A DNA stretch of 64,000 nt from positions 62,001-126,000 of IMG/VR virus record IMGVR_UViG_3300011934_000017. One strand, given 5' to 3'. Shown piece by piece: positions 5,053 to 52,564 of this stretch. Position 1 is the stretch's first letter. Each line of letters begins with the position of its first letter. The position numbers were made by a program, and so were the translations under genes. Below the pieces are notes generated by a model, which saw nothing but the letters and a program-made list of their open reading frames with translations, did not search any database and was not told the origin of the DNA.

Positions 5053-5056
5053 CTAT

Positions 5057-6763: not shown

Positions 6764-6805
6764 GTTAATTCTCCGAAATTGAGGAAGCGTTATGCTCGTT
6801 TAAAA

Positions 6806-8169: not shown

Positions 8170-8180
8170 TTTGATTCCTA

Positions 8181-9355: not shown

Positions 9356-9365
9356 TGAAACCTCC

Positions 9366-15174: not shown

Positions 15175-15678
15175 TCAAGGACGAATCCAAAGAGCGCCCG
15201 CACCTACAGCACCGGGATCAGCAGACTGAATGTAGATATCTACTTTACCGTCTTCACCTTTAGGGCCTGTAGCACCGGTCGCACCCATAGGCCCCATCTC
15301 GCCTTGAGCACCCATCTCACCTTGCGGACCAGTAGCACCCGGAGTTCCAGGAGGTCCTTCACAGCCCGGAGGCCCTTGTAAGCCGTCTTCACCTAGCAGT
15401 CCGTCAGTCCCGTCAACGCCACCTATACCTTGAGCGCCTGCAGGGCCGACACCTATATCACCCTGAGTCATGAAGCCGCGAATCTCTATACTCTGACCAT
15501 TCACTAACGTCAGCTTTAGAGTGCCTGTAACGTCGTTAAAGCTGCCACCAATAACGCCTGTGTTATTGATATCTTCATCTTCTTGGGTGCCGACTTCTTT
15601 ACCGTCGTATCGAACGTCAGAATTAGGACGACCACGAGCTTCAAGCATCGAAAGCGGTGTTCTAGTTAAGCCTCCCAT
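15175..15678 (-). CDS. Short collagen-like fibre protein (paralog 5)
   Basis: 23 Gly-X-Y triplets; ends QSADPGAVGAGALWIRP. Confidence 0.8.
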   Translation of the reverse strand: MGGLTRTPLSMLEARGRPNSDVRYDGKEVGTQEDEDINNTGVIGGSFNDVTGTLKLTLVNGQSIEIRGFMTQGDIGVGPAGAQGIGGVDGTDGLLGEDGLQGPPGCEGPPGTPGATGPQGEMGAQGEMGPMGATGATGPKGEDGKVDIYIQSADPGAVGAGALWIRP

Positions 15679-33229: not shown

Positions 33230-34369
33230 ATGAAAGCTTATTTGAAGACCGCAAAAGAACTGTTGTCTGTGTCGGCGAAGCGGAAAATGGATCGCACAGG
33301 TGTCGGCACTTCGTTCAAAGTGTTCAACGAAGAAGAGTTTAATCTAAAGTTTGGTGGGCAGTTTCCTATTGTCACCACAAAGCAAGTAGCAATCCGAGCT
33401 GTAATAGGTGAACTACTTGGCTTCATTCGTGCTGCCGACAGTGCTGCTACATTCCGAGAACTTGATTGTAACGTATGGAACGCAAACGCGAATCAAGAAA
33501 ACGAAACAGGTTCGAAAAATGCGTGGTTGCGCAGCCCGTGGCGTAAAGGTGAAGACGATCTCGGTAGAATCTATGGCGTACAGTGGCGTGAATGGGACGA
33601 CACGCGGATAAGCAATGCTGAAGATCATCAGCGCTTTTTGCGTGATGGGTACAAAGCTGTTGCTCAGTTCGATCAAGACGGTCAGCGAAAAGTGGTTTGG
33701 AACAGAAAGGTAGATCAGCTACAACAAGCTGTCAATCTAATCCAGAAAAACCCAGAAAGCCGGCGCATAATCATCAGTGGTTGGAATCCTTCTGATCTGG
33801 ACAAGGGCGCTCTACCTCCATGTCATATTCTACAGCACTTTATCTGCGAACCCTTAGGCGAACAGGAAAGAATCGAAGCACACATAAAGAATATGGAAAA
33901 CGAGGCAATCTGGAACGGAGCAGAAAGAGAAATAATTGCGACCAATGTTAGAAATCATATTCTACACCTGTTTAATACGGATAGTCCTTCGCACGAACAG
34001 CTAGACGAGTACAATCTTCCACGGTACAAGCTAAATCTGGTGGTCTATCAACGTAGTGCTGACTGGTTGCTTGGCGTTCCATTCAATATCTCCAGCTATG
34101 CGACGATGATAAACATAATGAGTAGAATCACAGGCACAGCGCCCGGTACTCTGCACTATTGCACAGGCGACACGCACCTGTATAACAATCATCGGAATGC
34201 GATGAAAGAACAGACTACAAGAACACCTTCGTCTGAAATAACAAGGCTATTAATTAATCCACAGTTGAAGACGTTGGAAGACTTTGAACAAGCAAGCCCT
34301 TCTGACTTTCGATTGTTTAACTACCAACATCAAGGCAAGCTGAAGAACCCAGCACCTATGGCAATTTAA
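33230..34369 (+). CDS. thyA: Thymidylate synthase
   Basis: DRTGVGT, LGRIYGVQWR, SRRIIISGWNP, ALPPCH (catalytic Cys), YQRSAD.LGVPFN, GDTHLY.NH. Confidence 0.97.
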   Translation: MKAYLKTAKELLSVSAKRKMDRTGVGTSFKVFNEEEFNLKFGGQFPIVTTKQVAIRAVIGELLGFIRAADSAATFRELDCNVWNANANQENETGSKNAWLRSPWRKGEDDLGRIYGVQWREWDDTRISNAEDHQRFLRDGYKAVAQFDQDGQRKVVWNRKVDQLQQAVNLIQKNPESRRIIISGWNPSDLDKGALPPCHILQHFICEPLGEQERIEAHIKNMENEAIWNGAEREIIATNVRNHILHLFNTDSPSHEQLDEYNLPRYKLNLVVYQRSADWLLGVPFNISSYATMINIMSRITGTAPGTLHYCTGDTHLYNNHRNAMKEQTTRTPSSEITRLLINPQLKTLEDFEQASPSDFRLFNYQHQGKLKNPAPMAI

Positions 34370-34379
34370 AGGCAGCACT

Positions 34380-34766
34380 ATGGACATGAAAAGAAAGAGG
34401 GTGTATGTAGAAGAAATAGACACAACGCTTCAAGGCTATATGATAGACAAGCCTTACGTATCAGCAGCGATGTTCATCAAAAGCCTGAGTGACCTACCTA
34501 TTGTTGTTTGCAGGCAGATAACGAATACTTATTCTATAAGGAACGTATTCAAGCGAATCGAAATTGGAAGCGAGGAGATTCCTTTATTTCCTTTAGACTC
34601 CTTCGAACCTCTGTCCGATGTACTATCAGAAATAGAAAACAGAAAATTCAGGGAACTCCGTAAACATAAAAAGCGTTGTGAACCAAGCGATTATCAGATC
34701 GACGAAAATCTGGCCGAATTGGTAATGATGAAACTTGCACAGTCAATAGGAAAAGAAAATGATTGA
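34380..34766 (+). CDS. Hypothetical protein
   Basis: 128 aa, tightly packed behind thyA. Confidence 0.55.
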   Translation: MDMKRKRVYVEEIDTTLQGYMIDKPYVSAAMFIKSLSDLPIVVCRQITNTYSIRNVFKRIEIGSEEIPLFPLDSFEPLSDVLSEIENRKFRELRKHKKRCEPSDYQIDENLAELVMMKLAQSIGKEND

Positions 34767-35247
34767 TATTGAAAAAAGTAAATGGTGTTTGGAGCCGGAC
34801 ACTCTGTACAAGCTTGCCTTAGACATGGAGAAAAACAGGAAGCTTTCTTTCACTGAAACAGAAACGGGCATAAAGGAATGTACTGTACCTCTTCGAAGCG
34901 CTGCTGTAAAGGACGTATTTTATTCAATAGAAATTCGTAGAGGTCCGAGTGGTGGTGAAATAACAATAAATATGACAGATGGAGATTCAGGAGAAAAGGT
35001 AAAAGTATACGAGAACGGAAGGATATTACGATGGGGAGCTTGGGCATTAGAGCTTATGCAAGCGTTACCTCCTCTCATTGCAAGGGAAAGTAACGCTGCT
35101 GCCCATATCAAGGAAGGAAACGCTCGAATTGAAAGCGTTTTGTTTGACACATTGGACGGAAGAATTGGAGTATTCTTCGGTAAGGAAGAGCATCAACGCA
35201 TTTTGGAAGAAGACAAAAGCGGTATGCTAGTTCGTTCTCTATACTAG
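34759..35247 (+). CDS. Hypothetical protein
   Basis: 162 aa; 8-nt overlap with the preceding gene. Confidence 0.55.
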   Translation: MIDIEKSKWCLEPDTLYKLALDMEKNRKLSFTETETGIKECTVPLRSAAVKDVFYSIEIRRGPSGGEITINMTDGDSGEKVKVYENGRILRWGAWALELMQALPPLIARESNAAAHIKEGNARIESVLFDTLDGRIGVFFGKEEHQRILEEDKSGMLVRSLY

Positions 35248-35588
35248 AGTTTACCTTTAGGACCTCCAACAATCGTGCGTCCTTTGGGAGGAGCAGAATC
35301 GCGTTCGTGTCTGCCCTCCCATATTTCACGTTTAACATGGACGTCACGCGCAGAACCTGGATCCTGTGCATCTGTTCCCGATCGAGGAAGCGCAAGATCA
35401 CGCTTAGGTTTCTTGCCTTTCTTTTTGTGGCGATGTTTAAACTCTTCGACAGTTTCATCCCAAAGATCGCCATTATCTTCCTGCCTCGGCAATCTTTGCC
35501 CTTCCCCTCTGCTACCCGAATTATCTGGTGTAGTAGCAGCCTCTTCTTCTGAATCAGTGTAAGACCTTTCAACGAAAATCTTAGCCAT
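35244..35588 (-). CDS. Low-complexity charged protein (likely start MAKIFVERS at 35588)
   Basis: Begins 1 nt after the topoisomerase stop; acidic then Lys/Arg-rich. Confidence 0.5.
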   Translation of the reverse strand: MAKIFVERSYTDSEEEAATTPDNSGSRGEGQRLPRQEDNGDLWDETVEEFKHRHKKKGKKPKRDLALPRSGTDAQDPGSARDVHVKREIWEGRHERDSAPPKGRTIVGGPKGKL

Positions 35589-35589
35589 A

Positions 35590-37308
35590 TTATGCACCTT
35601 TTACAGAATCGATAGCTTTCTGAATCTTAGCGGGAGGACGAATACCTAGGTTCGTATAGAACTCTGCTAAGATTTCAGGACTAATATAGTTTCCGATCGC
35701 CGTGCTTGTTGTGACTTTTTCTCCGCTGGTATGACCAAGCTCATTACCTACATCCATAATCTGTTCTTCTACCCACTGGTTTACCTCTCGCTCAGTCCAA
35801 TCTCCGCCTTTCTTGAACGGACTCTTCTTCAGAATGTCTGCGACCATCTTAGTAGCTTTAGATGTTCTGAATTTATGAACAGTGAAGTCGGGATGACCAC
35901 CAAGCGTTCTAAGATACTTAGTGACTAGCGTACTCGTAGGTGTCTTTTGGACACCGCCTTGACCTTTCACCAAAAATATACTATCAGTAGCTTTTTTACC
36001 TTTCATGTACCGCTTAAGGTTCTTAACCAGCAGCTTTAATGCAGGGGAGCTATTATAATGAATAACGTGGTGTTGTTGGGCACCTGTATTACTGGACTGA
36101 GACTTACCTTTGTATTTAACGATGACCTTGGTTTCGTCTATCTTGACGTGACGAACTTGAAGCTGGGTAGTGGCGTAGGTGGTTTCACCTTTTGACGCGG
36201 TACCTGGGTTACCTGGACGTGCAGAAGTAGTGTATATAAACTCCAGGATAGTAGCAAGCTTTCCATTCAATGTGTCCGGCTGCTTCATATCCAAGCGCCA
36301 TTTACGCGCCATTGCAGGTAGCTTGGGCATAGTTGCAGTAACGGCGGCAAACTTTTTATTTTTGGAAGCTGCACGATAATCTTCGGTATAAGCTTTAGAA
36401 GAATCTGTTGCACCGAAAGGAGTGAATCGGCAGACATACGTGTTATCTAGTTTCGGGTCGTACTCTGGGTTCATACGAACTTCACCGGAAGGTGCCGTTA
36501 GAAGTTTCTTGCCTTTGGTTGTATAGAACTTGCCCGCGTCATCTATCATACCGATAAAATCTTTAGGCAAAGTGTTAGGGATGCCTTCATCTTTTAAAGC
36601 TTGAACAACTTCTCCAACAGGTAAGTACGGCTTACCGCTGCTGCGGACCAAAGATTTCAAACGAGTCTTCATTGTGTTTCGAAGCGTTGTTTGCAGCTTC
36701 AAGTATCGAACATGGTCGTCCAGTTTCTTACCTTTAACCTTAGCTATTTTTTGCCACTGTTGAAGAGTGTCTAGCGGAAGTGTTAGACCCGGAGTACCTG
36801 CATACTTCTCTACTAGAGTTTCTAACTCAGAAGTCTCGCCCGAAATGTCATCATGCTCTTCGATAAACATTTCATTAACATCTGGATCTTGAAAGCGTGT
36901 CACAACCTTAGAAAGCCTAGACGACGCAGCACCACTTCCCTTCGTTTGTATGAGGCGCAAATCATTAAGAAGAGCAAGGTCTTCTTTAGTTAGATCCAGC
37001 TCTTCCTTTAGATCAGGTGTCTTACTTTTTAAATCCATAACAACGTCGGTTATAGATTGCTCAAAGTCTTCATCTTCGTTAGGATCCGCACCAGCGACTA
37101 ACTGCTTATGCGCTTTTGTAAGCAGGGTTTTCTTGAGCTTAAAGCGCTTTACGAACGGTTCCATTCGAGCCATCCAGAGATTTACCTTGCGCATATAAGA
37201 AGGTTTATACTCAAACTCCTTAGACATTACAAGAGACATTATAACTTTCATATAAGCCTCAGCACTGTCCTTTTCTACTGCACTAAGTGAAACGAAACCT
37301 CGAAGCAT
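35590..37308 (-). CDS. Type IB DNA topoisomerase with N-terminal extension
   Basis: Catalytic pentad in order: SARPGN (R), YKGK (K), HKFRT (R), LGHT (H), AIGNYI (Y). Confidence 0.85.
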   Translation of the reverse strand: MLRGFVSLSAVEKDSAEAYMKVIMSLVMSKEFEYKPSYMRKVNLWMARMEPFVKRFKLKKTLLTKAHKQLVAGADPNEDEDFEQSITDVVMDLKSKTPDLKEELDLTKEDLALLNDLRLIQTKGSGAASSRLSKVVTRFQDPDVNEMFIEEHDDISGETSELETLVEKYAGTPGLTLPLDTLQQWQKIAKVKGKKLDDHVRYLKLQTTLRNTMKTRLKSLVRSSGKPYLPVGEVVQALKDEGIPNTLPKDFIGMIDDAGKFYTTKGKKLLTAPSGEVRMNPEYDPKLDNTYVCRFTPFGATDSSKAYTEDYRAASKNKKFAAVTATMPKLPAMARKWRLDMKQPDTLNGKLATILEFIYTTSARPGNPGTASKGETTYATTQLQVRHVKIDETKVIVKYKGKSQSSNTGAQQHHVIHYNSSPALKLLVKNLKRYMKGKKATDSIFLVKGQGGVQKTPTSTLVTKYLRTLGGHPDFTVHKFRTSKATKMVADILKKSPFKKGGDWTEREVNQWVEEQIMDVGNELGHTSGEKVTTSTAIGNYISPEILAEFYTNLGIRPPAKIQKAIDSVKGA

Positions 37309-37318
37309 TTTAATTCTC

Positions 37319-37747
37319 CTACAAGAACAATCGGTTGAATTTATTTAGGTATAAAAAGTTTTTGTGCTCAGAACGAGGCACTGGATATCCAATGTAGCGC
37401 ACAGTAGGCGTCCATTGTATTCCAGCAGTAGGCTCTACAACTTGATCGTTCTGCACACAAAAAGAATGAGTGATAATGCGAGGATCGGGATCCCACTCGT
37501 CAGGTACAATAAGATACCCAACGTACACAGGAAGATCGTTCTCTTCAGCAAAAGCTACAGCATTATCATGAGGTGTGGTTCTTGAAAGCGCCCCTATGTT
37601 CTTTCCTTTAGGAATTGATTGTAATGTCCGAAGACGCATCAGTATATCTGGCATATACATGTACTTTCGAGACAGCTTTTGAATAATCAATTCGGGCAAA
37701 GGATTAACATTGGTTTTAGGCGACATTCTGGATATTGATATAAACAT
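37319..37747 (-). CDS. Papain/transglutaminase-like fold protein, catalytic Cys apparently replaced
   Basis: PHDNA...VYVGY...ITHSFC....VVEPT resembles the C-x-x-NA...GY...HxW...DxT pattern. Confidence 0.4.
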   Translation of the reverse strand: MFISISRMSPKTNVNPLPELIIQKLSRKYMYMPDILMRLRTLQSIPKGKNIGALSRTTPHDNAVAFAEENDLPVYVGYLIVPDEWDPDPRIITHSFCVQNDQVVEPTAGIQWTPTVRYIGYPVPRSEHKNFLYLNKFNRLFL

Positions 37748-37755
37748 TACGAATC

Positions 37756-38325
37756 CTATATGTCTTGAAGCCCTAGAAGTCTCGCAGCGTGGAAAGGACG
37801 ATCTTCTAAAGAAATGTTGTAAGGAAGAACAGGAGCACCTAACATAATTCCCATGCTGGACATTGTGTTTTCTAGCAGGCGCATGTGCTGTGCGTCTTTA
37901 CGTCCCTTATAAGGCTCGTCTTTATGTTCCAGATTAGCGTGGGACTGAACAACCAACACCTTATCAAACCTATCTACCAGACTTTTGGCGTTTTGCATAT
38001 ATTCGACAAAAGCCTGATGATCATGGTCACCACGTTCTACAACTGTTGTCATAGTATAACCAATCAGGTCTATTGTGGTTCGATCAAATATCGTGCTCTG
38101 TTGACGGCCTAAACAAAGGTCTAGCGCTTCGTGCATTTTATGAAGTGCTGTATTCTGCACGGCAATACGTTGATTCCAAGGTAGAATCTGATCAGGCAAT
38201 AGACCGTGATGTTCGAAGCTGGCGCGAATAACAGAGGGTTGAAAGTATAGATCGTACTTTTCAGCCAAGGTCATGGCTAAATAGGTTTTACCGCAACGAT
38301 GTACTCCTGAAAGACCGTAAATCAT
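37756..38325 (-). CDS. Nucleotide (dNMP) kinase-like P-loop protein
   Basis: GLSGVHRCGKT Walker A; IFDRTTID motif. Confidence 0.7.
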   Translation of the reverse strand: MIYGLSGVHRCGKTYLAMTLAEKYDLYFQPSVIRASFEHHGLLPDQILPWNQRIAVQNTALHKMHEALDLCLGRQQSTIFDRTTIDLIGYTMTTVVERGDHDHQAFVEYMQNAKSLVDRFDKVLVVQSHANLEHKDEPYKGRKDAQHMRLLENTMSSMGIMLGAPVLPYNISLEDRPFHAARLLGLQDI

Positions 38326-38816
38326 TTTTGTTCCTTATCTATGTATAGACGTTTGCGACGCTTATGTATACGCTTAGACTCTCCTCCACGCCAAGCCATG
38401 CGTAGTATAAGGGCTTGGACAATAGTAGGGTCAACTTCTTTACGCTTTGCGTTCAAAGCTACCTTGATATATCCACTTCTTTCGCAGAGAATCATAACGC
38501 CGACGCCGTGCTCTTTTAACTCGGCACGCACCTTCTTTTGGAACTTGGGTTTGCTCCAAAGCGCTTCAGTGAACACCATATAAAGACGATTGGTGTAAGG
38601 CAAATAGGTCTTCCACTTGTTGTCAGCATTATAGTCTGCAACACAGCTTTTGACTTCGCAGCCTATAAGATCGCCTTTTGTATTCAAGGCAAGTATATCA
38701 AGGCGTTTCTTTCCCCAGCTTTCAACTCCAAGCTCTATATGGCAGGAGTAGCGCTTATGACTCAGGTAGTACACGGCAGCCTTCGTCAGGACGCTGGTTG
38801 TGTGTTTTCTCGACAT
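38322..38816 (-). CDS. mmcB: MmcB-family DNA repair endonuclease (start adjusted to MSRKH at 38816)
   Basis: RLDILAL..KG.LIGCEVKS...DY.AD.KW..YLPY.NRLY. Confidence 0.8.
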   Translation of the reverse strand: MSRKHTTSVLTKAAVYYLSHKRYSCHIELGVESWGKKRLDILALNTKGDLIGCEVKSCVADYNADNKWKTYLPYTNRLYMVFTEALWSKPKFQKKVRAELKEHGVGVMILCERSGYIKVALNAKRKEVDPTIVQALILRMAWRGGESKRIHKRRKRLYIDKEQK

Positions 38817-38874
38817 AACTTTTCCACGCTGAAACAATAACATAAATTATATCGAATTTTGAGGCTGGAGACCG

Positions 38875-38908
38875 AAAAAAGGGCTAGAGTCGAATGACCC
38901 CAGCCCTT
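38875..38908 (-). terminator. Rho-independent terminator
   Basis: Minus strand AAGGGCTGGGGTCA-TTC-GACTCTAGCCC-TTTTTT downstream of 38927..39256. Confidence 0.75.
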
Positions 38909-38926
38909 GAGTATAAAGCTTCTGCG

Positions 38927-39256
38927 TTATTTACCCAATGAGGTTCTACGTGCAACCTTTTCAGCCATACGCTTTTTACGCGGAGCTTCGGAAGCTTCTT
39001 GGCCAATGTCTGCCAGCTTGTCGTTGATATCGTCCACAGCATCACTCAGTTTTCGATATTCAGGAAGCAATTTTCTAATCGCTGCCTTATCTCCTTTATC
39101 TTCGGCTCTATCCATTTTAAGCTTAATGCCGTTCAATTTGGACATCAAAGGCTTTTTCTTTTCTTTCAGCTTGTCAGCTTTTGGGCCTTTAGCTTTGCGC
39201 CTTAGACCAGCATAAGGATCGTCTTGGCTTTTGCTTGTAGAAATAAATACTTGCAT
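38927..39256 (-). CDS. Basic coiled-coil protein (possible DNA-associated internal head protein)
   Basis: 109 aa, very Lys/Arg-rich; begins MQVFISTS. Confidence 0.55.
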   Translation of the reverse strand: MQVFISTSKSQDDPYAGLRRKAKGPKADKLKEKKKPLMSKLNGIKLKMDRAEDKGDKAAIRKLLPEYRKLSDAVDDINDKLADIGQEASEAPRKKRMAEKVARRTSLGK

Positions 39257-39266
39257 TGTGTTTCTC

Positions 39267-39647
39267 CTAGAATTTTTTCAGATATACTGCGGAATTTTCT
39301 TTGCGTATCTGCAAAGCATCGTTAATAGTGCCACCTTGAACTAAACGAAAGCCGTTTTTCCAAAACAAGCGAACGCTAGTATCACTACTACATTGCGCTC
39401 CAATATCACGAGGATAAACGGAGAGCACTTCTTTCAGAAGCTTATCTGCTACACCCTTGTTACGCATTTCAGGGCTTACGAAAGTCTCAACCACAGAATA
39501 CTTAGCAGGAGCATACGGCGGCTTTATGGCTACCACAATTCTGCTTTTAGGGTCTTCATCGTGCTCGAATACATGACCCTTTACATTATCGAACAGGTGT
39601 ATCATTTTTGCAGGTTTGTCGGAAGCACTGGATATGAAAATTTTCAT
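39267..39647 (-). CDS. GNAT-family acetyltransferase
   Basis: FVSPEMRNKGVADKLL acetyl-CoA motif A; S..LFWKNGF motif B. Confidence 0.8.
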   Translation of the reverse strand: MKIFISSASDKPAKMIHLFDNVKGHVFEHDEDPKSRIVVAIKPPYAPAKYSVVETFVSPEMRNKGVADKLLKEVLSVYPRDIGAQCSSDTSVRLFWKNGFRLVQGGTINDALQIRKENSAVYLKKF

Positions 39648-39656
39648 ATGATTCTC

Positions 39657-40166
39657 TTATGTTTCAAACAGACCCACGCGCTCTTCTACAGGGTTCAGTT
39701 CAGGCATTATAGAAAGCAACTCTTCTTTCTTCATGTAAGGCCAATTTTTAGGCATGCGCAGTCTATTACCTTTCTTGTCCATTAAAAGCAGCATGAACCT
39801 GAAACCCTTTTTATGGCAAGCAATAGCCTTAGCGCAAGTCATACTCCAACCACGCTGCTTATTTCCATGGAGTCCTAACGTGTGTGTAGACTTTACTTCT
39901 ACCACGAGACGTTTTGAAATTACAAATAGGTCTGGATAGTAAGTACGCATTTTCTTCCGGTACTTATAACGAATGTTCAATGCGTTTCCAAACTCTTCTT
40001 CACATCGAATATCAGAAGCTTCAAGTCCCAGTTCGTCCGTTAAGTAGCGTATGGCTTGCGGCTCATAGCCTTGAACCTTTACGTGTCTGTCACCTATTGT
40101 GGTTTCATACTGTCTAAACTTTTTTGTCTTTCTTCGCCGTCGCTTATGTTTGTGTGCGGAAAGCAT
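39657..40166 (-). CDS. PD-(D/E)XK endonuclease-like protein
   Basis: VQGYEP...RTYYPDLF.....VVEVKS. Confidence 0.7.
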   Translation of the reverse strand: MLSAHKHKRRRRKTKKFRQYETTIGDRHVKVQGYEPQAIRYLTDELGLEASDIRCEEEFGNALNIRYKYRKKMRTYYPDLFVISKRLVVEVKSTHTLGLHGNKQRGWSMTCAKAIACHKKGFRFMLLLMDKKGNRLRMPKNWPYMKKEELLSIMPELNPVEERVGLFET

Positions 40167-40173
40167 GGTACAC

Positions 40174-40419
40174 CTATAGATCGAGAGAAATCTGGACCAT
40201 GTGAGAAGATGATTCGGAAGCAGTTTCGTATCCTGACATTCGCTTCCAAATTCCCATCACATAGGCATAAAACTCGTTAGAGTCTAGCTCAAGTCCTTTT
40301 TTCTCCGCTATAGTCTTAGCGCGTTCCCAAAGAGCTTCTAGCTCTTCAAAAGCCTCTTCCTCTTCGATATCGTGGCGTTCAGCGTAGGTTTTGGCAAAAG
40401 AACGAATAACGGCAGGCAT
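40174..40419 (-). CDS. Small conserved-type phage protein (ChaB-like helical pattern)
   Basis: MP..I.SFA...E.LWERAK......FYAYVMGIWKRM. Confidence 0.5.
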   Translation of the reverse strand: MPAVIRSFAKTYAERHDIEEEEAFEELEALWERAKTIAEKKGLELDSNEFYAYVMGIWKRMSGYETASESSSHMVQISLDL

Positions 40420-40472
40420 AAGTAAACTCCTAAAGTGCTCTTAGGGTAAATTATATGCCTACCGTCGAATAT

Positions 40473-40949
40473 TCAAACAGTTTCTTCTAGCTTATCTAGC
40501 ATAGGAGATAGCGCAGAAGGCAGTTTCTTTCGTGCTTTTTCAATAGTGAACCACTTTCGTTGGCGTCGTTCGGCTTCTGGCCATTCTGTCAGTCGTTCTT
40601 TTACTTCCATTGCATACACATCAACTTTCTGCGGACGACCTGTAGCACCCTTGATATAAGCATACTTTCCAAGCTTCTTTTTAGCTTTGCCTAGAAGACC
40701 TGCCTCTTCGTATGCTTCTGTCTCAGCAGACTTGCGCTTGGTCATATCGGGCTCTACGCCGCCTTTGGGAAGTCCCCACTTTTCAGAGTGGGAGCTGGAG
40801 ACCAGTAGAACTTGAAGCTCTCCATGTTTGTTGAAACGATAGGGAATAACGCCCGATTGCTTGCGAGGCTTTCGAGACGCATTCTTTCTTCGAATCTTTT
40901 TAGGCAGTTTTTGAGTAGGCCCTGATGCTAATGAAACAGTGATTTCCAT
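40473..40949 (-). CDS. Nudix hydrolase
   Basis: WGLPKGGVEPDMTKRKSAETEAYEEAGL Nudix box; W.E...RQRKWF as in diadenosine/diphosphoinositol polyphosphate hydrolases. Confidence 0.9.
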   Translation of the reverse strand: MEITVSLASGPTQKLPKKIRRKNASRKPRKQSGVIPYRFNKHGELQVLLVSSSHSEKWGLPKGGVEPDMTKRKSAETEAYEEAGLLGKAKKKLGKYAYIKGATGRPQKVDVYAMEVKERLTEWPEAERRQRKWFTIEKARKKLPSALSPMLDKLEETV

Positions 40950-40959
40950 CGTATTATCC

Positions 40960-41457
40960 TCACCAGTTTTGAACTACACTTGCTACAGCGTAGCGTGGTT
41001 TACCGGGTCGTTTGAAAAATTCGTGATTACCGATCTTGCCTAAAAATTCGTATTCAAAATACCAATCTGGCAGCAAATGATCTGGAATGACGCTTGGGTT
41101 TAAGTAATGAGTAGCGCCTTTGACAGGCGAGTCTGGTAGACCGTCGTAAAGGAAGCTATAGACTATTCGCGCTACTGCAAGCTCCTCTTCCTCTGAAGGG
41201 TCCCCAATAGGATGACCTTCAATAGTCCAAGAAAACTGATAGGGCTGGTATATCACTTTAGACACACCTTCAGGAAAGTCTGTTCTTAGCGATCTTTCGT
41301 GAACAACTTCAAGAACAGCCAGTTGGCCCAAAAGAGGTTCACCACGCGCCTCATGTAATACGTTTTCGATCAGGTTAGCGTGTGAAGGATATTGCATATC
41401 GGAATTATGAAGATCAACAACAACCGCCATAGGAAGTAGCAAGGATTCGAGTAACAT
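40960..41457 (-). CDS. Cell-wall hydrolase (SleB/Hydrolase_2 family)
   Basis: HEARGEP..GQLAV..V...R...FP..V..VIYQPYQFSW; GATHY.NP; IGNH.F. Confidence 0.9.
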   Translation of the reverse strand: MLLESLLLPMAVVVDLHNSDMQYPSHANLIENVLHEARGEPLLGQLAVLEVVHERSLRTDFPEGVSKVIYQPYQFSWTIEGHPIGDPSEEEELAVARIVYSFLYDGLPDSPVKGATHYLNPSVIPDHLLPDWYFEYEFLGKIGNHEFFKRPGKPRYAVASVVQNW

Positions 41458-41542
41458 AAAAGCTCCTAGATAAAATGTGCAAACTTTTCAAGTTTAACAA
41501 AGTGCGTAACCACTTTTCTGAATACATCAGGGTTACTCTTTC

Positions 41543-41551
41543 ATTATATCA
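41543..41551 (-). promoter_or_regulatory. Possible host sigma70 extended -10 promoter
   Basis: Minus strand TGATATAAT in the intergenic gap upstream of the cell-wall hydrolase. Confidence 0.35.
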
Positions 41552-41568
41552 TAGGTAGCTTTTAAAAT

Positions 41569-43086
41569 CTAGTCCCAGCGCTTGTGTAGCGCTTCTATCA
41601 GTCCCTTCTCTATTGCCTTGTCCGTCATAACAATAATATCGCCGAACGCTTCCAAGCATAGGTCCACATATCTTTGGTACTCGATACGGCCTTCGTAGGC
41701 GTTCTTATCATAACCTTTCGATAACCACTGGATAGCCTCTTCGCCGTCCAATTTGCGTAAAAGCATTTCCTTACGCAACATCTTAAAGTGGTCGCTTTTG
41801 AGTAAGTGACGATCTTCAATAGAGGCCCACTTTTTCTCAGCAGCCTGATACTCTGCCTGTGAAAGCTTATCCCGCGCTATGTCCAAAGCGCGAAGCATGG
41901 CATTACCATCAGCGTGTCCAGAAATGCGGGCAAAAGACAAAATACCGTGCATAAACCGGTTCAGATTCTGATCTATGATGACTGTGGCTGCATCTATAGC
42001 TCCTTTAATTTCAGGGCGAATATCCCCACGCACTGGAGTCAAGTCGCCTTCGTCCTTAATCGTCATGTTTTTAACAAGGGATTCTACATGCCTTTTAGGG
42101 AACAGTAAAAGACGCCGATTTTTGCTAATAGCGTTTCGGGCAGTCAGTTTAAGTCCTTCGAACGCATAAGAGCTGGTTGTAGTGCCATACTTGTAGCTTA
42201 TGAAAGACATTTTTACGTCTATACGATAGCGAAGTTCTTCCAAAAGATCAGGAATATTTTTCTTGAAATCTTTGGACGAATGGAGAACCAAATACTTATC
42301 ACCTTCAAGTTCCAATAACATTGTAGGTTCGGGACTAGCTAAGGTCGCTTCTGTTAGATCGTACTCCTTAGTGTCAATCTTATACCCGTGCTTATTGAGC
42401 CGGTGCATATCTTCCAAGAACAACGGGCCGTGACCTGCTTGATTGTACAGTGCGTTTCCATCTTCGTAGAAACGCTTATAGTGAAGCAAGTGTATCATTT
42501 CATGCAATACAACTTCGCACACACGCGGAATATCGGTCAAAGCGTGTTTAGCCAGCTTCAATGTGTAGTTAAGCTGACCGCCTTTCATCTTTAACATGGC
42601 TTGTCCGGAAAACTTGGACGCTTCTGAAAGCAGAAAGCGCACTTGGGTCGGACACTCATTCTTGAAATGTAGCTTATTGAAATAGTTATAGAGCCTAGCT
42701 ATGTCCTGCTTCTTAGGCGGCATAGGAATACTGGGAAAGAATTTCTCAGGTAAACCAGCGTCAGGATTGTGAACACGTTCACCTGTCTTAACGTCTTTGC
42801 CTCCAATGCCTGCTTTCAGACTTACACCCTTAACACGTCCCGAATATCCTGTAGAAAGACGAATAATCTTTTTGACTTCTGCTTCGGTCATAGTGAAGAC
42901 AATGCTTGGATCCGCAAGAACCGCGAGCTTCAGCTTGCCTGCATAAGTACGAATGCCATACTTCATCTTAGGTGCTAAGTCTAAATCATATTTCGGATTG
43001 TGATTTTCAAACGAAAGAGTTTTCTTACCTTGATATTGGTACCACTGGTATTTATCAATGGATACAGCAGCTAATGAAGTAAACAT
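41569..43086 (-). CDS. SprT-like zinc metalloprotease with an extra N-terminal domain
   Basis: LYNYFNKLHF...VVLHEMIH...GHGPLF...M..LN SprT signature. Confidence 0.8.
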   Translation of the reverse strand: MFTSLAAVSIDKYQWYQYQGKKTLSFENHNPKYDLDLAPKMKYGIRTYAGKLKLAVLADPSIVFTMTEAEVKKIIRLSTGYSGRVKGVSLKAGIGGKDVKTGERVHNPDAGLPEKFFPSIPMPPKKQDIARLYNYFNKLHFKNECPTQVRFLLSEASKFSGQAMLKMKGGQLNYTLKLAKHALTDIPRVCEVVLHEMIHLLHYKRFYEDGNALYNQAGHGPLFLEDMHRLNKHGYKIDTKEYDLTEATLASPEPTMLLELEGDKYLVLHSSKDFKKNIPDLLEELRYRIDVKMSFISYKYGTTTSSYAFEGLKLTARNAISKNRRLLLFPKRHVESLVKNMTIKDEGDLTPVRGDIRPEIKGAIDAATVIIDQNLNRFMHGILSFARISGHADGNAMLRALDIARDKLSQAEYQAAEKKWASIEDRHLLKSDHFKMLRKEMLLRKLDGEEAIQWLSKGYDKNAYEGRIEYQRYVDLCLEAFGDIIVMTDKAIEKGLIEALHKRWD

Positions 43087-48280: not shown

Positions 48281-51200
48281 TTAGAAAGATCGCGTATTTT
48301 TCTTTGACTGTTTTGGAGTCACAGAGCCGTGAGTAAGAGGAGTTTTCTTATTCGCTGTGATATCACCAAGTGCTCGGGCTATTTCACGATTCGACCGCTC
48401 ATTAGCTTTCTTCTGATCTGGCACAAACTTCTTTTTACCTGTTTTGGTGCGACCTACAATCTCTTCGTCTTCACCAAAGTCACGATTCAACATTGAAGGT
48501 CTACGGCCCATCTTTTGAGCAAGCACAGAGGAGCGCGTTCCTTCAGAGTAGTTCATAAGCTCGCGTAGGTCTTCATTGCCGCCAGAAGCGAAAGCACTTC
48601 CGTCATCACCACCTTCTTTGGGTCCGTACTTCGATTTAATCTCACCTACTTTCTTACTGTACTCTGACACCTTCTGCAAAAGCTCTAGGTCATCATCAGC
48701 ATCGGAAAGCAACGTGTCCAAGTTAAAGCCACCTGCCGCTGCAATAGCGCGAAGAGGAACGGGTACACCTTTTTCGGATAACGTAGTAAGCATTTCCATG
48801 TACTGCGTATCACCTTCAGGCTTTAGCTGCTTAGACCAGTGAACGTTAGGTATCAACAATCGAGTACCATCAGCCATCTTATCCAGATTAGCTTGCATGT
48901 TATCTGTATCAAGCAAGCCGTCTTTTCGAATCAGTTTACCACGTTCGTTGATTGTGTAGCCATTAACAAGGCTAACAAGCGGGAAAATCTTGTTGTAGAA
49001 AAGCTTGCGTGTCAGCATATCGCGGAATGCACGGATACTTTCAATGAATACCGTCAAGCTTGAGTCAGCAGTGTTGTGAACCACGAGACCATTCGCTACA
49101 AATGCAGGCTCTACTCCCGGCTGCATGGATATGTCGTAAACGTGTTGTTTACCGTTATCGTTGATAGATTTGATAGGAACAACCATATAACGAAGAGCAA
49201 CTAAGTCCATTACTCTACGATACATGGAAGGCGAAATTTGCTCCAATCTCTCAAGCAGACCGTTGTAATCGCCATTGTCGTATTTATCGTACATGAAGTT
49301 TTTACCGCACATGGAGTACATGTTTTCTCGGCAATTACGAAGTACGATAACTTGACCAGAATCATTCAAATAAGCTACACCTCCTCCGGCTGGACCGACT
49401 TTTCGTGCTTCCAAGAAGTCTTTAAGGAAGCGGTTAGGAAAACCATAGTCTTGTCTTGGTTTAACTCCGCGGTATTTACTCATATCCAGCTTTTTGGAAC
49501 ACAGATAAGTCTCAATCTTATTCCAGAATAGACGACTATCCGTGAAACTAAGCTCTACAAAAGATTTCCTACGGTGAGACAGAACACCGTGCGCAAGCAA
49601 CATGACCTGCACTTGTTCCATAAGTGTCGGGCTAGCAGAAGAAAAGGCAATTCTATCGCTGACATGTGCATCACCTTCCATGTACGCAGCCAAGAAAGCT
49701 AGTTGACTTTTCTCGTCGGCCTGCAAAACCGTCCAAGGTATTTCCTGATTATAGCTAGGCAGTTCACTTCCTTTTCGAGTATAAATAAAACCAAGTTCTT
49801 TGATCCAATGAACGATAGTTTTACTTCCTACTTCAAGAACATAGCAGTCTGCGTTTGCAACACCTGTCTTACCTTGAATATCGTAGTCGTCTGCTTTGGA
49901 AATACGTTTACGTACAGTAGCTTTGACTCCGAACAAATCTTTGAAGAATTTGGCTGTACGCTTGAGGAGCTTTTTGTCTGAGTTGGTGATAGCAAGCTTT
50001 TTGTCGCCTATTAGGTTACCTTCACTCACTAGCAAACCTAATAAGTACGCAAGCTTTGGTGTCATTTCAACAGGTTGCTTTAGATGTTTGCGCTTTCCAC
50101 GACGTCCTACTAAAGAGGTCTGATCTGTTAACTCGACAAGCAAACGATCGGAACGAACAAGTCCTTTTGTAGGAATACAAAGCGGATCTCCTAAGTTTAA
50201 GCTACCTGCTTGGATCCATTCTGTAGTTCCAGTGTCGTTAAAAACTAGGAATGGATGATTAGCAGTAGAAGCAAGTTCGTTTCCTTTTGAAGTAACGACC
50301 TTCAAAGTGTCGGCATAACCACTATACTTCCAAGAAGAGGTCTTCTCGTTTGCGTAGCGAGACTGCACAGTAGCGTCTAAGGGTACTTCAATGTCTTTTA
50401 AGGACTCGGAAGTATCTTTAGGTAGATGTTTTTCACCTACCATTTGATCAATACGAAGTAACCCCTTATTAGTAGGGATCAAAGAGTCGCCTGTTAAGCA
50501 AGCGTAGTTAGCCTCACCTGAGAGGAATGACTCACTGATACCGAGGGCGCGTAGCTTAAATGTAGCGGTGCTGTCCCATGTGTCTGTTACTTTCCAGAAG
50601 TCACCGCCTTGGCGAATTTCATCGGTTGTTACACCGAGGCGTGTTGCGATGATTGCGCCAAGCGGATCACTGTCAGCATTCATGAACAGGTCAGTCATGA
50701 ACTCCATGTCCGCTACAGTAGGTTCCCACTGGTCTCCATCACCCAAAGAAATATGAAGTATACCGCGCTGCCTACGACTAGATTCAACAAGCGTACCGCG
50801 AAACAGATTCTTTTCAATCAGGTAAAGAGGCAGTACGCGACGATAGAACGATACGCCTTCACCACTCGTGAAAGTCTTACGTGGAATATACACTGTAGTC
50901 AGCGGATCCAACTCAAGTGCATCTTGTTGGAGAAGCTGAACAACGTCTTCACCTAAACGGCTCTTCAAGTTTTGCATTCGAGGTCCGTCAGAACTCAACG
51001 ACGCTTGAACGCTCTCTGGAATTGATACTGTGATGATAGGGTCTTGACCGTAGAACGGCAGACTATCTATCTTGGCGTTATCATTACGATGCGGCATCAT
51101 ATCGAAGAAACGCTTGGAGCTTTTGTTGTATAACAGACTTCCGATGAATGCACCGTCTACCAAGTGGTCAGTAGATAGGTGAGGAAGAATAGTACGAATG

Positions 51201-51613
51201 TTAAGGCGTTCTACGGTTTCCCGAAAAGAACGCATGGCGCGTTTGTCTGTAACACCGCCGATTGTGAAGTCGGAGAACGGAAGCGTAGACAGCATATCGA
51301 CCGCACTTCCGCATACCGCATCGTTGTAATAAATATCTCGGTAAAGACGGTTAACTAGCTTCTTTTGTTCGAGGTCTTCCGAGAACACAATGTCTTTCAG
51401 AAGAGGATCAACGTCTACCTCAATAGGCATTTGGCTGACACTGGTGTTTTGCATACTTGTACCGGCGGCAGTTGCAGACCAATCTTTAGCCTCTGCGGGA
51501 ACACGGCTCTTACCTGAGCTATTTGTTCCTAGACTAGCTTTTTTGCCTGGAGGTGCCACCTCTTGCTGATCCGAAGAAGTTGCATACGTGGGTTTTCGCT
51601 TAAAGCGCATCAT
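48281..51613 (-). CDS. Probable portal protein containing an intein (~634 aa after splicing)
   Basis: Two genes downstream of the large terminase; YRDIY..D..CGSAVD, GVSFYRRVL and LRALGISESFLSG patterns are portal-like. Confidence 0.6.
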   Translation of the reverse strand: MMRFKRKPTYATSSDQQEVAPPGKKASLGTNSSGKSRVPAEAKDWSATAAGTSMQNTSVSQMPIEVDVDPLLKDIVFSEDLEQKKLVNRLYRDIYYNDAVCGSAVDMLSTLPFSDFTIGGVTDKRAMRSFRETVERLNIRTILPHLSTDHLVDGAFIGSLLYNKSSKRFFDMMPHRNDNAKIDSLPFYGQDPIITVSIPESVQASLSSDGPRMQNLKSRLGEDVVQLLQQDALELDPLTTVYIPRKTFTSGEGVSFYRRVLPLYLIEKNLFRGTLVESSRRQRGILHISLGDGDQWEPTVADMEFMTDLFMNADSDPLGAIIATRLGVTTDEIRQGGDFWKVTDTWDSTATFKLRALGISESFLSGEANYACLTGDSLIPTNKGLLRIDQMVGEKHLPKDTSESLKDIEVPLDATVQSRYANEKTSSWKYSGYADTLKVVTSKGNELASTANHPFLVFNDTGTTEWIQAGSLNLGDPLCIPTKGLVRSDRLLVELTDQTSLVGRRGKRKHLKQPVEMTPKLAYLLGLLVSEGNLIGDKKLAITNSDKKLLKRTAKFFKDLFGVKATVRKRISKADDYDIQGKTGVANADCYVLEVGSKTIVHWIKELGFIYTRKGSELPSYNQEIPWTVLQADEKSQLAFLAAYMEGDAHVSDRIAFSSASPTLMEQVQVMLLAHGVLSHRRKSFVELSFTDSRLFWNKIETYLCSKKLDMSKYRGVKPRQDYGFPNRFLKDFLEARKVGPAGGGVAYLNDSGQVIVLRNCRENMYSMCGKNFMYDKYDNGDYNGLLERLEQISPSMYRRVMDLVALRYMVVPIKSINDNGKQHVYDISMQPGVEPAFVANGLVVHNTADSSLTVFIESIRAFRDMLTRKLFYNKIFPLVSLVNGYTINERGKLIRKDGLLDTDNMQANLDKMADGTRLLIPNVHWSKQLKPEGDTQYMEMLTTLSEKGVPVPLRAIAAAGGFNLDTLLSDADDDLELLQKVSEYSKKVGEIKSKYGPKEGGDDGSAFASGGNEDLRELMNYSEGTRSSVLAQKMGRRPSMLNRDFGEDEEIVGRTKTGKKKFVPDQKKANERSNREIARALGDITANKKTPLTHGSVTPKQSKKNTRSF
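49073..50500 (-). mobile_element. Intein with LAGLIDADG homing endonuclease (476 aa)
   Basis: YA|CLTGDSLI block A; T.NHPF block B; LAYLLGLLVSEG and FLAAYMEGD motifs; VYDISM block F; FVANGLVVHN|T C-terminal junction. Confidence 0.93.
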
Positions 51614-51676: not shown

Positions 51677-52564
51677 TTATACCCAGTCAGCGCTTAGCTC
51701 CCACGCTTTGCAACTCCAATAACCCGGTGTTGTTTTGTCTTTCTTGGTGCTACATTGATGGCGTGCCATGAAAGACTTTCGACGCGCAGGATCGTCACGT
51801 TTAATCGACATATTAGGATCGCCGAACTTGACTTGAATGATGTTTCCCTTATCGTTTTTCACGTACACGCCAAACTTCTTTTTGCTTCCCTTAGGCAGAC
51901 GAAACGGCTTTTCTAGCGTTACTTGCTTTCCCTTGTATTCACCAGAACTTGCTTCAACTGAACTTGCGGTCGATTCGTCTATACGCATTGCAGGCTTTAG
52001 AGGTTTGATCTTACGTGCAAAATAACTGCCTTGAGAAGCGGCTCTTTCGAGCGACGTAGCCTCTTTCTTCGACACTAGCTGATATTCCCAATGCGCTCCA
52101 TTGTGGAACGTTACATACAATATCTCTTTCTTCGGGTCGTGCACCAGTCGAGAGAATACGGAGCTATCCGCAGTAAGGACTGTGTGGCCTTCAGTTGTTT
52201 TCCTAGACTTGCGCTTTTCCTTAGGGTCTTTGCCTCCTATAAAAGGAAGTACCTTGTACCGGCTAATCTTTCCTTCGTACCCCTTAGAGTTCGCAATGAT
52301 ACGTCTAGCATCCGTGATATCGAGCCGAAATTGAACAGACAGATTAGACTCGTCCAGAATATAAGTAAAGCCACGGAAGTTTTTAACACCAAACTTCTCG
52401 CCTTTTGTTATCTCTAGCTCATACTCTTTTCTGTCAGAACCTACAACGTCAAGAACAAACTTTCGGCCTACGTATTCCAACCAACGGTACTTTCTTGGGT
52501 CCCTCTTTTCAGAAGCTAGTGCTTCAAATTCAGGTAATTGTGAAAAGGATCGCATATTAAGCAT
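51677..52564 (-). CDS. Three-domain protein: unnamed N-domain + KTSC + DUF6321-like basic C-domain
   Basis: KTSC: SSVF..L.HDP....LYVTFHNG..WEY..V......S.GSYF; C-domain YKGKQVTL.KP...KKF.VYVKN.KG....V.FGDPNM...RRKSF.ARH.C....GYWSC.AW. Confidence 0.7.
   Translation of the reverse strand: MLNMRSFSQLPEFEALASEKRDPRKYRWLEYVGRKFVLDVVGSDRKEYELEITKGEKFGVKNFRGFTYILDESNLSVQFRLDITDARRIIANSKGYEGKISRYKVLPFIGGKDPKEKRKSRKTTEGHTVLTADSSVFSRLVHDPKKEILYVTFHNGAHWEYQLVSKKEATSLERAASQGSYFARKIKPLKPAMRIDESTASSVEASSGEYKGKQVTLEKPFRLPKGSKKKFGVYVKNDKGNIIQVKFGDPNMSIKRDDPARRKSFMARHQCSTKKDKTTPGYWSCKAWELSADWV

Follow-up and report, generated by a model that had tools for sequence, protein, structure and literature searches.

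A short N-terminal leader peptide on unrelated enzymes of an uncultured jumbo phage and its relatives: a putative address tag inferred from sequence

Six unrelated proteins of an uncultured jumbo phage begin with the same 7-10-residue peptide, and dozens more proteins in related phages carry a leader of the same kind. Most likely this leader is an address tag for a shared phage partner, plausibly the inside of the capsid, although the destination is inferred from sequence and gene context alone. The sequence analysed, here called the window, is a stretch of 64,000 nucleotides (positions 62,001 to 126,000 of IMG/VR record IMGVR_UViG_3300011934_000017). It belongs to a 220-kb stromatolite jumbo phage related to the Pseudomonas phages PaBG and Lu11. 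We found no published description of the leader.

An earlier note, made from the sequence alone, had pointed out that a topoisomerase IB, a GNAT protein, a Nudix hydrolase, a SprT protein and two further proteins start with M-x(0-3)-[FT][IVT]-S-x-[SA]. This observation is confirmed, and the phenomenon is larger than the note reported. The genes of the array and its surroundings, all on the minus strand, are the following.

35244..35588 (-): 114-aa acidic/basic ORF with a degenerate leader-like start, MAKIFVERS; a weak member.
35590..37308 (-): topoisomerase IB, 572 aa; leader MLRGFVSLSAV, residues 1-11 (37276-37308).
37319..37747 (-): 142-aa protein of unknown function; leader MFISISR, residues 1-7 (37727-37747).
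37756..38843 (-): kinase-like (37756-38325) and MmcB-like (38322-38843) genes inside the array, without the leader; N-termini MIYGLSG and MLLFQRG.
38879..38908 (-): terminator-like hairpin (13-bp stem, T-run), which splits the array into a SprT...orf109 unit and an MmcB...topoisomerase IB unit.
38927..39256 (-): 109-aa lysine-rich protein (orf109), pI 10.0; leader MQVFISTSK, residues 1-9 (39230-39256).
39267..39647 (-): GNAT-like acetyltransferase, 126 aa; leader MKIFISSAS, residues 1-9 (39621-39647).
39657..40419 (-): PD-(D/E)XK/DUF7487 nuclease (39657-40166) and an 81-aa ORF (40174-40419), without the leader.
40473..40949 (-): Nudix hydrolase, 158 aa; leader MEITVSLAS, residues 1-9 (40923-40949), followed by a basic linker, residues 10-32.
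40960..41457 (-): cell-wall hydrolase/endolysin-like gene, without the leader; N-terminus MLLESLL.
41569..43086 (-): SprT-like metalloprotease, 505 aa; leader MFTSLAAV, residues 1-8 (43063-43086), directly before a KTSC-like module.

Each of the six tagged genes starts with ATG. Five are preceded by a ribosome-binding site of the AGGAG/GAGGA type, whereas the GNAT-like gene has a weaker AAGAGA, and most follow the upstream gene within about 10 nt. The interspersed kinase-like, MmcB-like, nuclease, 81-aa and cell-wall hydrolase genes lack the motif, as the note had stated for four of them, and so do all tail, baseplate, portal and terminase genes. With the note's own pattern, 6 of 65 window ORFs match at the N-terminus, whereas 0.11 are expected from the rate of the core at internal positions. 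Of 5000 residue shuffles, 4742 gave 0 hits, 250 gave 1 and 8 gave 2. Over 161 kb (181 genes) of the same phage genome there are 7 hits against 0.17 expected (Poisson 7e-10). As the pattern was derived after the data had been seen, these numbers are optimistic. The note had also named two weaker matches. The one at 35588 is plausibly a degenerate copy, since the gene at the same position in the closest relative (locus L013) starts MLEISLSVS. The one at 52564 is rejected, because it is not at the N-terminus and the orthologues in PaBG, Lu11 and HRDY3 have no leader.

The tagged proteins are unrelated to each other beyond the leader. Topoisomerase IB matches Pfam Topoisom_I on residues 311-536 and phrog_23460 over its full length; its orthologues in PaBG, NCTB, Lu11 and HRDY3 each carry their own phage's spelling of the leader. 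The 142-aa protein is conserved just upstream of topoisomerase IB in 25 loci (family 7), and the BLAST alignments begin after the leader, which differs by phage (MKIQIAIAS, MKMMLALAA, MRIAVAKAA). The 109-aa protein is an ORFan in the fetched loci, with no family match above threshold. The GNAT-like protein itself is below Pfam thresholds, and its assignment rests on relatives that carry recorded PF13508/PF13673 domains. Its leader is kept in 59-85% identical relatives, with a Pro insertion in some. The Nudix hydrolase matches Pfam NUDIX on residues 33-152, and in its AlphaFold model residues 1-10 have a mean pLDDT of 59, against 90.9 for the whole protein, with a short strand at residues 2-5. 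The SprT-like protein matches phrog_37767 and phrog_3292 and, weakly, the human Spartan SprT domain (6mdw, E 0.0075). Among the genes without the leader, the kinase-like and MmcB-like genes match Pfam AAA_28 and MmcB-like, respectively, and the same pair lacks the leader in PaBG, Lu11 and HRDY3 as well; the endolysin-like gene matches phrog_938.

Relatives carry the same kind of leader in phage-specific spellings: MKIQLAVA in Lu11, MEMQLALA in HRDY3 and MKIISISA in NCTB. With an independent, looser pattern, 191 of 1356 proteins in 51 related loci match against 18 expected, and the leader sits on about 40 unrelated protein families. The spelling is shared by all tagged proteins of a genome, which fits co-evolution with one phage-encoded receptor. 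In general form the leader reads M-x(1-3)-hydrophobic-hydrophobic-[S/A]-hydrophobic-[S/A]-small, always within 1-5 residues of Met1, and it is often followed by a flexible, basic or Pro/Lys-rich linker. The Lu11 leaders are written with freely varying synonymous codons and have unrelated upstream DNA; thus selection acts on the peptide and not on the DNA. Whether cellular homologues lack the leader had been proposed as a check. Cyanobacterial Nudix homologues (about 50% identical) start at the Nudix domain and have neither leader nor linker, whereas the phage relatives keep both, so the leader is an add-on. It is also gained and lost within families: the SprT family has it in the window/PaBG branch, while the orthologues of the Lu11 branch start MANYRY without a leader.

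The note had interpreted the peptide as a capsid-targeting tag, analogous to but different from that of T4, which might end in an S-x-[SA] cleavage site and would load enzymes and basic proteins into the head for co-ejection with the DNA. This interpretation is partly supported. That the peptide is a genuine, modular tag on non-homologous proteins holds, and the capsid is the best, though unproven, reading of its destination, for which the support is circumstantial. Cleavage after S-x-[SA] is not supported, judging from sequence: no conserved residue or Glu follows the leader, the leader tolerates insertions, and the conserved motifs of the capsid-protein propeptide are Glu-type (TGE-F/I-NA, RRE-V/L-L) and not leader-like. 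Nor is the tag confined to this cluster, since six more leader genes lie elsewhere in the genome.

One of these, a LigT-like gene, lies between the gene for a protein with a prohead-protease-like fold and the scaffold-like, gp81-like and major capsid genes. Of the five further ones, three lie among topoisomerase II, primase and nuclease genes rather than structural genes, which speaks against capsid targeting. The window array, in contrast, continues a tail/portal/terminase array and runs into baseplate genes, and in Lu11 and HRDY3 12-16 tagged genes fill the same slot. All six window proteins are basic, with pI 9.1-10.1 against a genome median of 5.9, like the basic internal proteins of T4 (PMC9026906). 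The tagged block is a variable region, as GNAT, Nudix and orf109 are absent from the closest relative; T4 internal-protein genes vary in the same way. The virion bands of PaBG include gp83 (starts MLIKINLLEAVAAK) and a 221-kDa SNF2 helicase (starts MGSLFTLNSLSAA) (PMC7412058, Table 1). However, these starts are only loosely leader-like and fail our pattern, and that study, which identified only 14 Coomassie-visible bands, did not list the topoisomerase, SprT or the family-7 protein. The major capsid protein, the gp81-like protein, the portal and the scaffold-like protein lack the tag.

A possible interpretation, which we hold tentatively, is that the tag docks as a short extended strand onto one phage-encoded receptor during head assembly, either the scaffold-like protein or the inner face of the HK97-fold capsid protein. 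Tagged proteins would then be enclosed in the prohead and leave with the DNA at infection. In this phage the cargo would be a set of basic, DNA-directed or small-molecule-directed enzymes (topoisomerase IB, SprT-like protease, Nudix, GNAT-like, LigT-like) plus small basic proteins, acting in genome protection or host take-over. The existence of the tag, the selection on the peptide, its add-on nature, its occurrence across the clade and its phage-specific spelling are results of our analysis. The receptor and any binding to it, the presence of the carriers in heads, packaging by the leader and ejection are inferences. Removal of the tag by the prohead protease is possible, but nothing here supports it.

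Alternatively, the leader could be a short linear motif for a shared phage partner other than the capsid, such as the sliding clamp or replisome, the phage DNA or nucleoid, or an AAA+ chaperone or unfoldase, and thereby gather DNA-processing and accessory enzymes at the replicating genome. We consider this possible but less likely. Many tagged proteins act on DNA or lie next to DNA enzymes: topoisomerase IB, the SprT-like protease (eukaryotic Spartan is recruited to PCNA), a 122-aa protein beside gyrB/parC-like genes and two proteins beside a PD-(D/E)XK nuclease. These phages encode clamp-loader and clamp-like genes, and the basic linkers and high pI would equally suit DNA association inside the cell. 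The A-type leader (E/K-M/I-Q-L-A-L/V-A-A) loosely recalls the bacterial clamp-binding motif (QL[SD]LF / QLxLxL), which has a Gln-Leu core with hydrophobic residues at positions 4 and 5/6, is present on polymerases and repair enzymes and occurs at the N-terminus of Hda, but the S-type leaders (FISIS, VSLSA) have no Gln-Leu core. Clamp-binding motifs do not need the extreme N-terminus, to which the leader is always bound. Moreover, Lu11-type phages tag 12-16 consecutive ORFans, including 630- and 900-aa as well as 80-90-aa proteins, in a late structural slot, which is far more clients than clamps usually have. In the parts of the genome read, in which the DNA polymerase was not identified, the recognisable replication proteins (primase, replicative helicase, topoisomerase II subunits, clamp loader, UvsX-like recombinase) are untagged.

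It seems unlikely that the leader controls protein amount, as an N-terminal degron or stabiliser read by a host or phage protease or as a codon context that tunes translation initiation. Its position fits N-terminal recognition signals, and position 2 is usually K, E, R or Q with AAA/GAA as common second codons, which would be compatible with an initiation-context effect. Yet synonymous sites vary freely while the residues stay fixed, and Ser and Ala interchange through unrelated codons (TCN, AGY, GCN), which argues against an RNA-level element. A phage-specific spelling is not expected for a host protease signal, and the tag is limited to particular gene blocks rather than to genes of one expression level. 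That the similarity has no function, being due to chance, mis-called starts or a leftover of duplication or recombination at gene 5' ends, is very unlikely. The motif does consist of common residues and the first pattern was drawn post hoc, but this explanation is contradicted by the enrichment (more than 40-fold in this phage, about 10-fold across the 51 loci), by starts that agree with database gene calls, by the lack of DNA conservation and by the retention of the leader in orthologues that are only 30-60% identical. A Sec, Tat or lipoprotein signal peptide, with its basic n-region, hydrophobic core of 10 or more residues and cleavage site, does not fit either, as the leader has 3-4 hydrophobic residues alternating with Ser/Ala, followed by polar or basic sequence.

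Among known systems, the capsid targeting sequence (CTS) of the T4 internal proteins IPI-III and Alt consists of about 10 N-terminal residues on otherwise unrelated, mostly basic proteins, is sufficient in T4 to load foreign proteins into the head, and has cargo genes that are poorly conserved between relatives (PMC9026906). The leader shares its length, position, diversity of carriers, variability of the gene block and basic pI. There is, however, no sequence similarity, the T4 CTS ends in a Glu site cut by gp21, for which no counterpart follows the leader, and the putative protease here gives HK97/COG3740-type fold matches and not a T4 gp21 sequence match. Some tagged genes also lie outside structural modules.

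Encapsulin targeting peptides (LTVGSLR) are similarly short, alternate hydrophobic and small residues, sit on a disordered linker and bind a hydrophobic pocket of an HK97-fold shell protein, thereby loading diverse enzymes (PMC11126975). The window leaders, for example ITVSLAS, have the same style and also sit on a linker. The resemblance is in form only; encapsulin peptides are usually C-terminal and their shells carry no DNA. A more far-reaching reading, which we consider possible rather than probable, is that the PaBG/Lu11 group, and in altered form the RSL1 group, use one evolvable 7-10-residue N-terminal strand as a general cargo-loading tag, read directly by the HK97-fold capsid or its scaffold much as encapsulins read their targeting peptides. 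Any enzyme that acquires the tag (topoisomerase, DNA-protein-crosslink protease, Nudix, acetyltransferase, 2H phosphoesterase) would become part of an injected payload. This would be a natural, portable packaging tag with spellings matched to each phage, and a mechanistic bridge between phage capsids and encapsulins.

The heads of the jumbo phages phiKZ and SPN3US pack many different proteins, including enzymes, whose N-terminal regions are thought to guide incorporation (PMC5694885, PMC7411985, PMC10052503). Those propeptides are long, are not a shared short motif and are removed at conserved prohead-protease sites of the type (S/A/G)-x-E. The phages studied here are a different lineage, with no virion RNA polymerase genes seen. 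In P1, an N-terminal signal of 10-30 residues directs the large enzyme DarB, or a reporter, into the capsid for delivery with the DNA (PMC9024508). The leader resembles this signal in form and in its position at the extreme N-terminus. This signal is described for one protein and depends on helper Dar proteins, whereas here one short motif is spread over about 40 families. The PaBG virion likewise contains a large enzyme, the 221-kDa SNF2 helicase; the 2004-aa homologue encoded by the phage of the window starts MTLSFEDG, at best a weak match to the leader.

Within the window, the region from 35.2 to 43.5 kb is a tight gene array on the minus strand, in which most gaps are about 10 nt, the exceptions being 111, 83 and 53 nt. 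In order of transcription it contains the following features:
SprT-like metalloprotease, 505 aa (41569-43086)
cell-wall hydrolase
Nudix hydrolase (40473-40949)
81-aa ORF
PD-(D/E)XK/DUF7487 nuclease
GNAT-like protein
109-aa lysine-rich protein
strong terminator-like hairpin with a 13-bp stem and a T-run, between the 109-aa gene and the MmcB-like gene (38879-38908, minus strand)
MmcB-like protein
kinase-like P-loop protein
142-aa protein
topoisomerase IB
114-aa ORF

The hairpin splits the array into two likely transcription units. Upstream of the array lie terminase, portal and tail genes. Downstream, a thymidylate-synthase island on the opposite strand (33230-35247, plus strand) interrupts the minus-strand array, and baseplate-wedge, tail and tail-fibre genes follow. 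Six of the array proteins begin with the peptide described in the earlier note. Each of them has an ATG and a ribosome-binding site, which is weaker for the GNAT-like gene. The note's observation was thus confirmed, with the exception of a weaker match at 52564, which was rejected.

With the pattern given in the note, 6 of 65 window ORFs match at the N-terminus, whereas about 0.1 are expected from the frequency of the core inside proteins, and none of 5000 residue shuffles gave more than 2. In about 161 kb of the same phage genome there were 7 matches in 181 genes against 0.17 expected. This census left out about 59 kb of the 220-kb contig, namely roughly 1-5.4 kb, 26.5-33.5 kb and 192-220 kb as well as an 18-kb stretch at about 126-144 kb. 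As the pattern was drawn after seeing the data, a looser, independent pattern was also applied to relatives (see below). The serine and alanine positions are written with unrelated codons (TCN, AGY, GCN) and the DNA upstream differs between genes; therefore the similarity lies in the peptide and not in the nucleic acid.

The window corresponds to positions 62001-126000 of a 220,237-bp contig from a stromatolite metagenome (IMG/VR UViG_3300011934_000017). Its large terminase is 40-53% identical to those of the jumbo phages PaBG, Lu11, HRDY3, NCTB, Dickeya JA13 and Erwinia Y3, whereas a search for near-identical DNA in cultured phages returned no match. Gene order matches PaBG and, more closely, Lu11. 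The shared order is terminase, portal, tail genes, SprT, MmcB, kinase, the 142-aa family and topoisomerase IB, followed in Lu11 by a DHFR/thymidylate-synthase island at the same place and baseplate genes.

The main new result is that the leader runs through the whole clade with a spelling specific to each phage. According to the deposited annotations, Lu11 has at least 14 genes around topoisomerase IB that begin MKIQLAVA-like, and its topoisomerase starts MNVHIAVAA. HRDY3 has at least 12 genes beginning ME(M/L)(M/Q)LALA-like; its topoisomerase starts MMEMSIAAA and its GNAT MELLIALAT. NCTB has MKI(I/V)SISA, MLISISLG and, on its topoisomerase, MLITLSRVA. In PaBG the leader is weaker (MHTSLSAV, MKVSFSLKG, MQLLIAMASA). 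Besides topoisomerase IB, the tagged proteins include Lu11 gp202-gp219 and PaBG gp84-86 and gp89. We fetched 51 topoisomerase IB loci from IMG/VR and predicted their genes with a codon-trained caller that reproduced 24 of 26 Lu11 annotations. In these loci the loose pattern M-x(0-5)-[ILVMFT][SAT][ILVMFTSA][SA][SAGTKR] hit 191 of 1356 proteins, against 18 expected. Two dialects stand out: (E/K)-(M/I)-(Q/E)-(L/I)-A-(L/V)-A-(A/S/G), seen in 129 proteins, and (M/I)-(L/F/I)-(I/T/L/V)-S-(L/I)-(S/A)-(A/S), seen in 60 proteins. RSL1-like phages show a further variant, MISISAALLRL or MKIEA..RL. In phiRSL1 (locus L012, 24600-28200) and in the loci L122 and L129 (7000-7900) runs of small genes start MISISAALLRL, MTYNISAATKRL or MKIEAAARL, which may be a longer, diverged version of the same leader with a conserved Arg-Leu.

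In Lu11, identical leaders are encoded with freely varying synonymous codons, and upstream DNA differs under identical peptides. Thus a DNA or RNA element and recent gene conversion were both rejected as causes of the similarity. Mis-called starts were rejected as well, since ribosome-binding sites are present, the genes are tightly packed and our gene calls agree with those of the databases. A signal peptide was rejected on composition.

About 40 protein families carry the leader, which behaves as a modular add-on. They include topoisomerase IB, SprT-like, GNAT-like and Nudix proteins, the 142-aa family, ORFans of about 300, 630 and 900 aa, and many small proteins. Pfam, PHROG and PDB searches with the large tagged Lu11 ORFans gave nothing informative. 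Within the SprT family, the window/PaBG branch has the leader and the Lu11 branch (MANYRY...) does not. For the Nudix enzyme, a search of 5.8 billion proteins showed that phage relatives keep a leader (MQILVSMAS, MQISISSAP, MEIAVASEP and others) plus a 20-residue basic linker. Its nearest cellular homologues, about 50% identical, are from filamentous cyanobacteria (Microcoleus, Kamptonema, Tychonema) and begin a few residues before the Nudix domain. The sample is a stromatolite metagenome. This may hint at the origin of the gene or at the host. The AlphaFold model of the window Nudix is confident overall (pLDDT 90.9) but not for residues 1-10 (mean 59), where it draws a short strand at residues 2-5. 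For Nudix the possibility that the leader is part of the enzyme fold was therefore rejected: the Pfam domain starts at residue 33, cellular homologues lack residues 1-32, and model confidence is low at residues 1-10. The domain boundaries of topoisomerase IB, GNAT and SprT also lie downstream of the leader. GNAT relatives keep the leader but tolerate a proline insertion in it.

The tagged block is a hot spot of gene turnover. The closest relative, L013 (IMGVR_UViG_3300020473_000013, 5000-10000), whose topoisomerase IB is 58% identical, lacks the GNAT-like and 109-aa genes and carries its Nudix (MEIAVASEP) in a different arrangement.

Walking along the contig located the head module. It runs, in this order, through genes for a glycosyltransferase, a 525-aa protein, a 114-aa protein, a 247-aa protein, a LigT-like 168-aa protein that starts MRHMIALADAK, a 672-aa Cys4-plus-acidic scaffold-like protein, a gp81-like virion protein and the major capsid protein. 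Three of its members have these positions on L076, the sequence holding this module:
L076:5851-6594, putative prohead protease (the 247-aa protein)
L076:7208-9226, scaffold-like protein next to the capsid gene, annotated 'ATPase' (PaBG gp082)
L076:9989-11089, capsid protein

The 247-aa protein is homologous to the annotated head maturation protease of PaBG. Its model matches many BFVD entries annotated as prohead protease (E down to 1e-8), but with TM-scores of only 0.35-0.56, and a fold search of the PDB gave no match; the assignment is therefore probable but not firm. The protein starts MALMQSISFSIG, which itself looks leader-like. This segment is conserved across the family and modelled as a beta strand (residues 4-11), and it might be the protease's own incorporation signal. 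In the 'ATPase' family of PaBG gp82 no ATPase domain was found. The alignment shows conserved Cys pairs, a long Asp/Glu-rich middle and a conserved C-terminal domain, suggesting a scaffolding protein. Pfam, PHROG and PDB searches with PaBG gp81, gp82 and gp83 gave nothing informative.

Six tagged genes lie outside the window:
the LigT-like gene in the head module
a 68-aa gene (MQINISLSAD)
a 122-aa gene beside gyrB/parC-like genes (MKVYISTAAS)
a 164-aa gene (MFISISFDEN) near a PD-(D/E)XK nuclease
a 141-aa gene (MQIELSMAKT) next to it
a 260-aa gene (MMLSISGK) just upstream of a 2004-aa SNF2 helicase

Hence the tag is limited neither to the cluster, where the earlier note had placed it, nor to structural modules.

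The tag is always at the extreme N-terminus, short and strand-like, followed by a flexible linker, attached to unrelated proteins, and spelled in the same way on all tagged proteins of a phage but differently between phages. These are the properties of an address read by one phage-encoded receptor. The existence of the tag, selection at the peptide level, its add-on nature, its spread across the clade and its phage-specific spelling are established by the sequence analysis, whereas the receptor, the capsid as the destination and delivery into the host are inferred. The best-documented precedents are packaging signals. The 10-residue T4 CTS, found on basic and poorly conserved internal proteins, is sufficient to load foreign proteins into heads (PMC9026906), and the N-terminal signal of P1 DarB behaves similarly (PMC9024508). 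In form the leader is also close to encapsulin targeting peptides, which bind an HK97-fold shell (PMC11126975). Support for a capsid destination is circumstantial. The array is embedded in late structural genes, a tagged gene lies inside the head operon, and the tagged block varies between close relatives. The six window proteins have uniformly basic pI values, 9.1-10.1 against a median of 5.9; across all tagged proteins, 8 of 12 have a pI above 9, against 42 of 169 others (Fisher p = 0.004). The PaBG virion bands include gp83 and a 221-kDa helicase, both with only loosely leader-like starts; gp202 of the virion study was matched to RefSeq gp284 by size.

Virion or capsid targeting is the reading we favor, albeit tentatively. 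No tagged protein has been shown in a virion, the PaBG proteome covers only 14 abundant bands, and three tagged genes lie among replication-type genes. The interpretation in the earlier note, a capsid-targeting leader perhaps ending in an S-x-[SA] cleavage site, is only partly supported: no conserved cleavage motif follows the leader, and the conserved motifs of the capsid propeptide are Glu-type and unlike it. Cleavage at S-x-[SA] has no support, and the tag may stay on the mature protein. A serious rival, though in our view a less likely one, is that the leader is a motif for a non-capsid hub such as the phage clamp or replisome, phage DNA, or a chaperone. This would also explain the DNA-related clients and the basic linkers. 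Yet it fits less well with the strict N-terminal position, with the 12-16 tagged ORFans in the late slot of Lu11-type phages, and with the absence of the tag from the replication proteins that could be recognized. A stability or expression signal seems unlikely, and very little weight remains for chance.

If the tag is a packaging signal, the injected protein payload of a whole clade of jumbo phages, including uncultured ones, could be read directly from genome sequence. Topoisomerase IB, SprT-like protease, Nudix, GNAT and LigT-like enzymes would then be flagged as first-minute effectors and candidates for anti-defence or genome protection. The tag would also supply a very short, natural means of loading foreign proteins into large capsids, available in matched tag/receptor dialects. 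If the partner turns out to be something else, the finding still stands, as a phage-encoded short motif placed on about 40 protein families, with the same spelling on all tagged proteins of a genome, is an unusually clean example of a viral hub-and-motif network. Relatives that carry it can be cultivated, Lu11 on Pseudomonas putida and PaBG on PAO1. Capsid-targeting-type leaders as such are known; searches of the accessible literature on PaBG, Lu11, Baikalvirus and Lupandier, on capsid targeting sequences, on jumbo-phage propeptides and on phiRSL1 virion proteins found no description of this one, whose function remains inferred. The large comparative study of jumbo phages notes the phage-specific topoisomerase IB of this group but no leader (PMC7824862).

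A different shared N-terminus, M(A/G/T)GLT(R/K)(P/V/T)... (for example MAGLTRPVIEQV), is found on five tail-fibre-like genes of the window:
10721-11527, minus strand
15175-15678, minus strand
15864-16526, minus strand
16556-19300, minus strand
19331-21127, minus strand

It is probably a common adaptor that attaches alternative fibres to the baseplate. For two of these genes the true start is an internal ATG and not that of the longest ORF. Just outside the window, a 1707-aa protein with RCC1/WD40-like repeats sits among tail-fibre genes (L137:11541-16664, contig about 56.6-61.7 kb).

A KTSC-like/phrog_3292 module recurs in three window proteins: the SprT-like protease (41569-43086, residues 9-100), the 295-aa protein between terminase and portal (51677-52564), and a DNA-binding-protein homologue (61690-62535, C-terminal part). 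The portal protein (48281-51613, minus strand) is 1110 aa long, whereas the PaBG and Lu11 portals have 625-660 aa; its extra C-terminal half of about 450-500 aa gives only weak, unrelated matches.
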